Under the pieces are notes generated by a model. It worked only from the letters and a program-made list of their open reading frames with translations, was not told the origin of the DNA and made no database searches. A stretch of DNA of 63,997 bases, counting the filler, from Olpidium bornovanus S191 (taxonomy: Eukaryota; Fungi; Olpidiomycota), in assembly GCA_017911155.1 (NCBI GenBank). It is 33 parts of 33 records of this genome, joined end to end, with 100 filler letters (N's around TTAATTAATTAA, not from the genome) between each part and the next. Parts side by side here need not be neighbours in the genome. Positions count along the whole stretch, not along the records: positions 30,753 to 32,300 come from JAEFCI010008287.1; 32 more parts are not named here. One strand, 5' to 3'. Positions 30,653 through 32,300 of this stretch are shown here, piece after piece. Position 1 is the stretch's first letter. The number at the start of each line of letters is the position of its first letter. The position numbers and the translations under genes are program-made.

Positions 30653-31022
30653 NNNNNNNNNNNNNNNNNNNNNNNNNNNNNNNNNNNNNNNNNNNNTTAA
30701 TTAATTAANNNNNNNNNNNNNNNNNNNNNNNNNNNNNNNNNNNNNNNNNNNNACGCCCCATCCCGCCCCCGAGGCCACCGCGTCAACCCGCCAGGTGCAT
30801 GGAGAGGGAAAATAGAGGTTCGGGCTTGCCGCGATGGCCGTTTTCTTCTATTGGAGACGCACTATATTTTTTAACGCACCATTTCTTTATTTCAATAGTG
30901 ACACGCAGAGCCATCCTATTTGCCGCGGAGCCCACGGACTATAACTTCACGAATTATGTAAATTATTGCAATGTAAATGCATGCCTCGCCCTAAATAATA
31001 ATATTGGCGGAAATGGGGTTCG

Positions 31023-31102
31023 CCGGGCTTCCCTCTGCATTTATCCGGGCTTGGGACCGGTCCCGGCCCCGTAAGGCGTGAGAAGCTACATTAGCCTCCC
31101 GG
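31023..31102 (-). ncRNA. Twister ribozyme, type P1 with P3 extension
   Basis: Minus strand CCGGGAGGC-UAA-UGUA-GC-[P3]-CCGG-UCCCAAGC-CCGG-AUAAA-UGCA-G-A-GGG-AAGCCCGG. P2 is UGUA/UGCA, P4 is CCGG/CCGG, T1 is CCC/GGG, T2 is GC/GC. Predicted U^A cleavage between 31093 and 31092. P1 is imperfect. Confidence 0.9.
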
Positions 31103-31329
31103 GAAAGGGCCGGTGTCTAAACGCGCTGCCAGGAGGAAGCCGGGGCGGACGGAGAGGGAGGGAGGGGGGTCGGTGCTGGATGCGGGAAAAGGGGGGAAGG
31201 GAGGCGTTGCTGCAGGGGCGGGCGACGCGTCCCAGAGAAACGCGCTGATGGGTTGATAAACCGACGCCCAGCCGACCCCACACCCCCTCTCCCCCTCACA
31301 CACACACACACACACACAAACTCACTCAC

Positions 31330-31361
31330 CCTGGTACGCTGTCACTTCTGTATTTCGGCAT
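31330..31361 (-). CDS. Probable first coding exon (MPKYRSDSVPG) of an unidentified gene
   Basis: GCCACATGC start context, perfect GTGAGT donor at 31329 followed by a (TG)n tract. No downstream exon identified. Confidence 0.45.
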
Positions 31362-32183
31362 GTGGCTCGAAGCAGACCTCAGCGGCGGCGCGCATCCCTC
31401 TGCAAATTGCGTTTGCTGCCGTCTTTCGTCCCGCCCTACCCCGCCCAGCCAGCCCAGCCCGACAGCTCGCTCCCCCCAAACCCGAGCCCCCCTTACCCAT
31501 TCCGCAGCGGGCGAGCCCAGAGCGAGATCGCCGTCGGACCCCGCCCGCGGAGTCGGCCGGCGCCGAGAACGGGAGCTTTTGCGCGCGCGGCTGGCCGTGG
31601 GCGACGCCGGACTGCGACGAAACCGGGTCCGCGCTCGTACGCCGTCACCGCATCGTGCAAGTGCCGCCAAGTATCGTTTTTTTTAATCGGCGCTTATGTT
31701 CTTTTGACCCTCAGCTCACGCCTCTGGCCATCTGCGATTTTTCGAAAAAGAAAACATTTCGCGGTTTCAGAATGCGATGCTTTTGTCTAGTAGAGGCGGA
31801 AGCCCTGGCCGTTTCAAAAAATAATATCTTCTTCTCACGGCGGCTGCAAACACCGGCGCGGATTTCATCTGGATCGCGCTGTCGATTTCTCGTTTCGTCG
31901 TTCCGGGCCCGCCTGTGTTTCAGAGTATCGTGTCAAAATTTTGAGAGAAAACGGGGAGAACTCGAAAAACAAAGGCCGCGGCCCTTTTTCCTTCCCAACC
32001 CCCCCTCCCCCTCCCGCCCCCACCCCCCGAACGACCCAAAGCGCTCGGGCATTCGACGGCAAGAGTTTTTTTTGGCTCCGACGGGGCCGCGGCGAGCACG
32101 AGAGGAAAGCGCCACGGTTGAAGAGAGGAAAGCGACCGCGCGACAAAAAAAGAAGGCGGGCGCGCAGCCGTTTCGCTCTCCCC

Positions 32184-32300
<117 letters not shown>

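Follow-up and report, generated by a model that had tools for sequence, protein, structure and literature searches.

A twister ribozyme match with an intact conserved core on a short, apparently non-coding contig of Olpidium bornovanus

Twister ribozymes are predicted in more than 1000 species. To our knowledge, the only twisters with an established biological role are the retrotransposon-linked variants of Schistosoma. For another self-cleaving RNA, the HDV-like ribozyme of CPEB3, cleavage of the pre-mRNA in competition with splicing has reportedly been proposed. Twisters cut at U-A in the loop L1, and twister variants are situated at the very 5' end of the Perere-3 elements (RTE clade) of S. 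mansoni, as described by Liu et al. (PMC8501958). In Perere-3, the AA of the cut site directly adjoins the target-site duplication, from which the P1 5' strand is drawn; P1 is imperfect for this reason, and twister cleavage frees the element RNA and allows its translation (PMC8501958). HDV-like ribozymes do likewise for R2 and L1Tc (PMC6765202). Twister and hammerhead ribozymes also occur in the 5' UTRs of fungal RNA viruses, where they adjoin an ORF in RNA genomes (PMC13725137). Within the class, a P3 hairpin is present in 78% of annotated twisters, and the general-base guanine is G45 in Osa-1-4 (PMC6154101). The literature was searched for reports joining a twister ribozyme with zoosporic fungi, and nothing was found.

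The window analysed here is a stretch of 63,997 nucleotides joined from 33 records of the Olpidium bornovanus S191 assembly (GCA_017911155.1), in which positions 30753-32300 derive from JAEFCI010008287.1 (the fragment). Real sequence runs from 30753 to about 32184 (about 1.43 kb), with a patchy G+C content of 44-75%, a GT microsatellite and long purine and pyrimidine tracts. At the end of the fragment, 32185-32300, the plus strand has a stretch of 116 C (the minus strand 116 G), which we take to be, most likely, a poly-G artefact of two-colour sequencing carried into the assembly, and not genome. Ten ORFs of the fragment gave no credible Pfam match (best E 0.15, under cut-off), and none of the ten was present in a collection of 15 billion proteins; the 1.43 kb look entirely non-coding.

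A cmscan search with all families of Rfam 15 gave a match to twister-P1 (RF03160) on the minus strand, 31095-31027, with a score of 45.0 bits, an E-value of 2.5e-8 and an alignment spanning model positions 1-68 of 68. No second ribozyme, of whatever class, was detected in the fragment by this search, all other Rfam matches having E-values of about 1 or worse. Weak miRNA-family matches at 31176-31301 (E about 1) were set aside, as they merely reflect pairable G-rich and C-rich tracts: minus-strand 31270-31320 (GT microsatellite and a G-rich block) can pair with the C/T-rich 31150-31235 in a long imperfect hairpin. When the full pseudoknotted structure of the twister was written out and checked pair by pair, 25 of the 25 helix and pseudoknot pairs were standard pairs. 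A first-pass annotation had placed all conserved twister elements on the minus strand and the cleavage between 31093 and 31092; the former is borne out by cmscan and the pairing, and the latter is the same bond as predicted from where cmscan aligns the UAA loop. The P3 hairpin, UCUC-AC-GCCU(UACG)GGGC-C-GGGA, is present exactly as it had been written there. Minus strand 31096-31026 is thus very probably a true twister ribozyme of type P1 that carries a P3 hairpin, with the following predicted parts:

31096-31026, minus strand: whole type-P1 twister with P3 hairpin (cmscan, RF03160; 25 standard pairs)
31093/31092, minus strand: predicted scissile bond U31093/A31092, from the UAA loop position in the cmscan alignment
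31093-31091, minus strand: L1 cleavage loop UAA (U31093, A31092, A31091), directly 5' of P2 (cmscan)
31096-31093, minus strand: P1 5' strand GGCU, including U-1; pairs with AGCC 31029-31026
31029-31026, minus strand: P1 3' strand AGCC; pairs with GGCU 31096-31093
31090-31087, minus strand: P2 5' strand UGUA; pairs with UGCA 31039-31036 (4 bp, one G.U)
31039-31036, minus strand: P2 3' strand UGCA; pairs with UGUA 31090-31087
31086-31085, minus strand: L2 GC, 5' half of pseudoknot T1; pairs with G31050 and C31049 of L4
about 31084-31061, minus strand: P3 hairpin (optional), with UCUC/GGGA outer helix, AC/C internal loop, GCCU/GGGC inner helix and UACG loop
31060-31045, minus strand: P4, CCGG 31060-57 with CCGG 31048-45, closing L4 UCCCAAGC; identical to the class consensus
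31056-49, minus strand: L4 UCCCAAGC; identical to the class consensus
31044-31040, minus strand: L2 3' strand AUAAA; identical to the consensus NUAAA
31035-31031, minus strand: L1 3' strand GAGGG; GGG 31033-31031 pairs with CCC 31055-31053 to give pseudoknot T2

Compared with the described type-P1 twisters (RF03160, clan CL00120; Osa-1-4 of rice and the Sma-1 series of S. mansoni), the fragment copy has identical UAA, GC, AUAAA, UCCCAAGC and GAGGG elements and an identical P4 (CCGG/CCGG); it also shares the 4-bp P2, the presence of P3 and the capacity for both pseudoknots. The loops match, letter for letter, the twisters tabulated for S. mansoni and rice in PMC8501958 and 17 natural examples from public contigs. 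The five pairs of pseudoknots T1 and T2 are all G-C, P2 covaries among natural twisters (17 tabulated examples), and the P3 hairpin alone folds at -7.3 kcal/mol. Unlike the described members, the copy has a shorter P1 that may draw in U-1, an internal loop and a UACG loop in P3, and U-A instead of C-G as the P3 closing pair.

Comparison with the Rfam twister-P1 model, which the first-pass annotation had suggested, thus gave a match over the full length, but its 45.0 bits lie under the Rfam gathering score of 67.2. Three environmental twisters with the same perfect core reach 67.5, 63.2 and 60.5 bits, two of the three also under 67.2, and the gathering score is therefore no sharp line and excludes clear members. 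Against these environmental type-P1 twisters (45 versus 60-67 bits), a further 15-20 bits are lost at three places, namely P1 with U-1, the length and internal loop of P3, and the P3 closing pair. In the P1 region, the model expects ccuu-U-AA, whereas the minus strand has GCU-AA, and cmscan treats U-1 as a deletion; P1 can be drawn either with 4 bp including U-1 or with 3 bp and an AA bulge. The P3 closing pair next to P4 is U-A, as against C...G in 17 of the 17 natural examples tabulated; both sides are changed with the pairing retained. None of these score-lowering changes in P1 and P3 touches an invariant position.

For catalysis, A31092 is, as we read it, the conserved adenine beside the cut, the general acid of the published mechanism. 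G31035 appears to correspond to the conserved general-base guanine, by our own numbering of Osa-1-4. Upon transcription of the minus strand, P2, P3 and P4 would form, and L4 would dock through T1 (31086-85 with 31050-49) and T2 (31055-53 with 31033-31). G31035 and A31092 would then catalyse the attack of the U31093 2'-OH on its 3' phosphate, which would yield a 5' product with a 2',3'-cyclic phosphate end at 31093 and a 3' product with a 5'-OH start at A31092. This course of events is inferred from the twister class, as the minus-strand copy itself shows the sequence elements alone.

Of about 2600 natural twister candidates assayed in vitro by McKinley et al., 94% were active (PMC11662667). 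According to the same work, twisters tolerate imperfections in P1, P2 and P4, their activity is independent of the length and stability of P3, P1 is dispensable, and sensitivity is confined to the pseudoknots and the conserved loop bases (PMC11662667). Since the score losses of the fragment copy fall in P1 and P3, parts that were tolerant in these assays, intrinsic activity is expected, and we consider it probable that the minus-strand twister would cleave in vitro. Taken as a whole, the locus is, in our judgement with good confidence, best explained by a genuine and complete twister that is probably active. Its tentatively favoured role is the trimming of the 5' end of the downstream RNA.

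Relatives of the fragment were sought in JGI metagenomes with a twister pattern fixed on the fragment's own P2, and with generic-core scans. The P2-specific pattern found three twisters, all in the tightly packed, ORF-rich surroundings that prokaryotes or phages typically show; their flanks are unrelated to the fragment, and the three were rejected as its relatives. The generic-core scans yielded 3 viral loci and 14 loci in prokaryote genomes. Beyond the 30-35-nt core, blastn detected nothing common to the fragment and any scanned locus (metagenome, viral and prokaryote). Several of the other loci deserve mention in their own right. A scaffold filed under Alcanivorax profundi (positions 1-2754) and one filed under Thalassococcus profundi consist of a tandem repeat with an 869-nt unit, each unit holding a variant twister with no AA at its cut site, and the same ribozyme with its immediate flanks recurs in both assemblies; the repeat looks like satellite or retroelement DNA of a eukaryote carried into both bacterial assemblies. 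Tiny scaffolds of Marinifilum breve (668 nt) and Vibrio aquaticus (351 nt) carry twisters with the P3 CTGTAGCTCTTCTAGAGTTACTG, which is of the Schistosoma mansoni type (PMC8501958), and are probably contamination of the bacterial assemblies. On a contig of a Nitrosopumilaceae metagenome-assembled genome, two identical 60-nt twisters (141-200 and 605-664) lie on the same strand 464 nt apart, with only the ribozyme repeated, so that a transcript would be cut into a unit of about 460 nt. Within the fragment itself, minus-strand 31404-31386, 365 nt upstream on the same strand, matches the twister 3' strand 31039-31021 in 16 of 19 positions (UGCAGAGGGA.GC.CG.CG); as a candidate second twister remnant, this segment scored 23 against a shuffle maximum of 22 (n = 300) with no extension, and was treated as chance.

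As to function, we tentatively favour a ribozyme that trims the 5' end of the RNA downstream of it, from 31092 towards 30753 and beyond; by analogy with Perere-3 in Schistosoma, the RNA so trimmed could be a repeated or mobile element. In a fungal setting, the twisters and hammerheads of the RNA-virus 5' UTRs (PMC13725137) offer a likeness in that the fragment twister, too, would be upstream of an RNA whose 5' end its cleavage would create; unlike those, it is situated in DNA with no ORF in view. In a more specific form, which is possible if on the doubtful side, an element (non-LTR retrotransposon or non-autonomous repeat) would start at the twister and reach from A31092 past the fragment end, and cleavage would free its RNA from read-through transcripts. 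Perere-3 in S. mansoni (PMC8501958) is the precedent, along with the HDV-like ribozymes of R2 and L1Tc (PMC6765202), and the fragment copy resembles the Perere-3 variants in its conserved core, its weak P1, which is short and imperfect, and a sequence character that differs across the cut. The G+C content is about 0.70 upstream of the ribozyme and falls to 0.44 beyond it, but AT-rich patches are found elsewhere in the fragment too. The break of the short contig 270 nt downstream would also suit a repeat, since assemblies often end in such sequence. Against a retroelement stand several observations. In the 270 nt between ribozyme and fragment end, no RT, APE or other ORF is visible (stops in all frames, no Pfam match), and, unlike in Perere-3, neither a target-site duplication nor a further copy was seen, the latter in the metagenome, viral and prokaryote-genome scans. 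The first-pass annotation had likewise remarked that there was no retroelement ORF nearby, a point without force because only these 270 nt lie downstream before the fragment ends. Also unlike in Perere-3, P1 exceeds what random flanks tend to provide: among arbitrary flanks (12-mers from the fragment), only 3-8% yield a 4-bp Watson-Crick P1, which mildly argues that the P1 5' strand is part of the unit and not a random insertion flank.

It is unlikely, by comparison, that the fragment holds an orphan or decaying twister copy, inactive through misfolding by a 5' hairpin and GC-rich flanks, or never transcribed. Left unconstrained, the 84-nt region has a minimum-free-energy fold (-33.2 kcal/mol) other than the twister fold, the nested part of which amounts to -16.9 kcal/mol. 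If P2 and P4 are imposed and the bases of the pseudoknots left unpaired, -25.1 kcal/mol is obtained, 8.1 above the minimum and with the five G-C pseudoknot pairs uncounted; the same gap, with pseudoknot pairs likewise uncounted, is 3.8-5.1 kcal/mol in three environmental twisters. Included in the minimum-free-energy fold is a competing element:

31100-31080, minus strand: 5' hairpin of 9 bp, GGGAGGCUA(AUG)UAGCUUCUC; -11.3 kcal/mol alone

This hairpin would be the first to form during transcription, and it would sequester T1 and the 5' strands of P2 and P3 along with the cut site. By way of this upstream hairpin and the GC-rich flanks, the native transcript may cleave more slowly than the minimal ribozyme; flanking sequence modulates twister and CPEB3 ribozymes, as stated in references cited in PMC11662667. 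In favour of decay, several fungal twister candidates were inactive in vitro, but imperfections of the present kind are tolerated by twisters (PMC11662667). In addition, the invariant nucleotides are unchanged and all pairs are kept, which would be unusual for a neutral relic.

The first-pass annotation had preferred an intronic or UTR ribozyme that acts as that of CPEB3 is said to act. The twister in its reading stood, by cmscan and pairing; the intron was not supported. Two features on the same strand bear on it:

31329-31324, minus strand: donor-like GTGAGT, the first unit of the GT microsatellite GGTGAGTGAGTTTGTGTGTG...
about 31235-31126, minus strand: 75% pyrimidine tract ending in CUGGCAG, a candidate acceptor; ends at 31126, 30 nt upstream of P1

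A twister placed within intron 1 of a protein-coding gene, where its cleavage of the pre-mRNA would compete with splicing, seems rather improbable to us; processing of an RNA 5' end, on the pattern of Perere-3, is no less likely. The intron draws on the GTGAGT at 31329-31324 that follows an ATG-initiated frame of 11 codons (ATG and 10 codons) on the same strand, and on AGs preceded by U-rich stretches downstream of the ribozyme. The GTGAGT is indeed upstream on the same strand, at a distance of 233-236 nt and not the approximately 225 nt given earlier, but instead of ending a probable coding exon it heads the microsatellite and occurs at about chance frequency (two overlapping GTRAGT sites, 0.63 expected per strand from base composition), and the 11 codons carry no coding signal. 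The 114-codon ORF around the ATG frame starts at TTG, gave no Pfam match and is absent from the collection of 15 billion proteins; its G+C by codon position is flat (0.71/0.72/0.67), and it therefore shows no coding periodicity. Further, the pyrimidine tract has its terminal CAG at 31126, upstream of the ribozyme, and an intron using this acceptor would leave the ribozyme outside, in the next exon. Because of the same tract, and hence of composition, all three minus-strand frames are open from 31329 to the ribozyme; a 74-codon minus-strand frame closed by the UAA of the ribozyme was for that reason given no weight. With CPEB3 and the amniote intronic hammerheads, the fragment twister, which is of a different ribozyme class, shares only the concept of self-cleavage within a pre-mRNA and, with CPEB3, a possibly inhibitory upstream flank, the CPEB3 5' flank being mentioned as inhibitory in PMC11662667. 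Still more improbable is a single-copy twister in, or at the edge of, an intron of an early-diverging fungus, with the hairpin 31100-31080 gating cleavage and splicing competing; if this were true, a twister would for the first time have been assigned a definite role in a gene of its host.

Chance resemblance within GC-rich DNA, to which the score under the gathering threshold might point, is negligible in our estimate, being excluded by the covariance-model E-value (2.5e-8, and by arithmetic still about 3e-5 for the twister family alone after rescaling to the whole scan of about 8 Gb) and by intact pairing, with some 29 fixed bases, four helices and two pseudoknots all correct.

The locus is one more match to a known ribozyme class, on a short non-coding contig. 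The twister identification made at first pass is right, and the CPEB3-like reading attached to it is speculation. With its catalytic core untouched, a fungal copy would make a promising candidate for the first fungal twister found to be active, and its copy number and flanks could show whether the link between twisters and retrotransposons reaches beyond flatworms.
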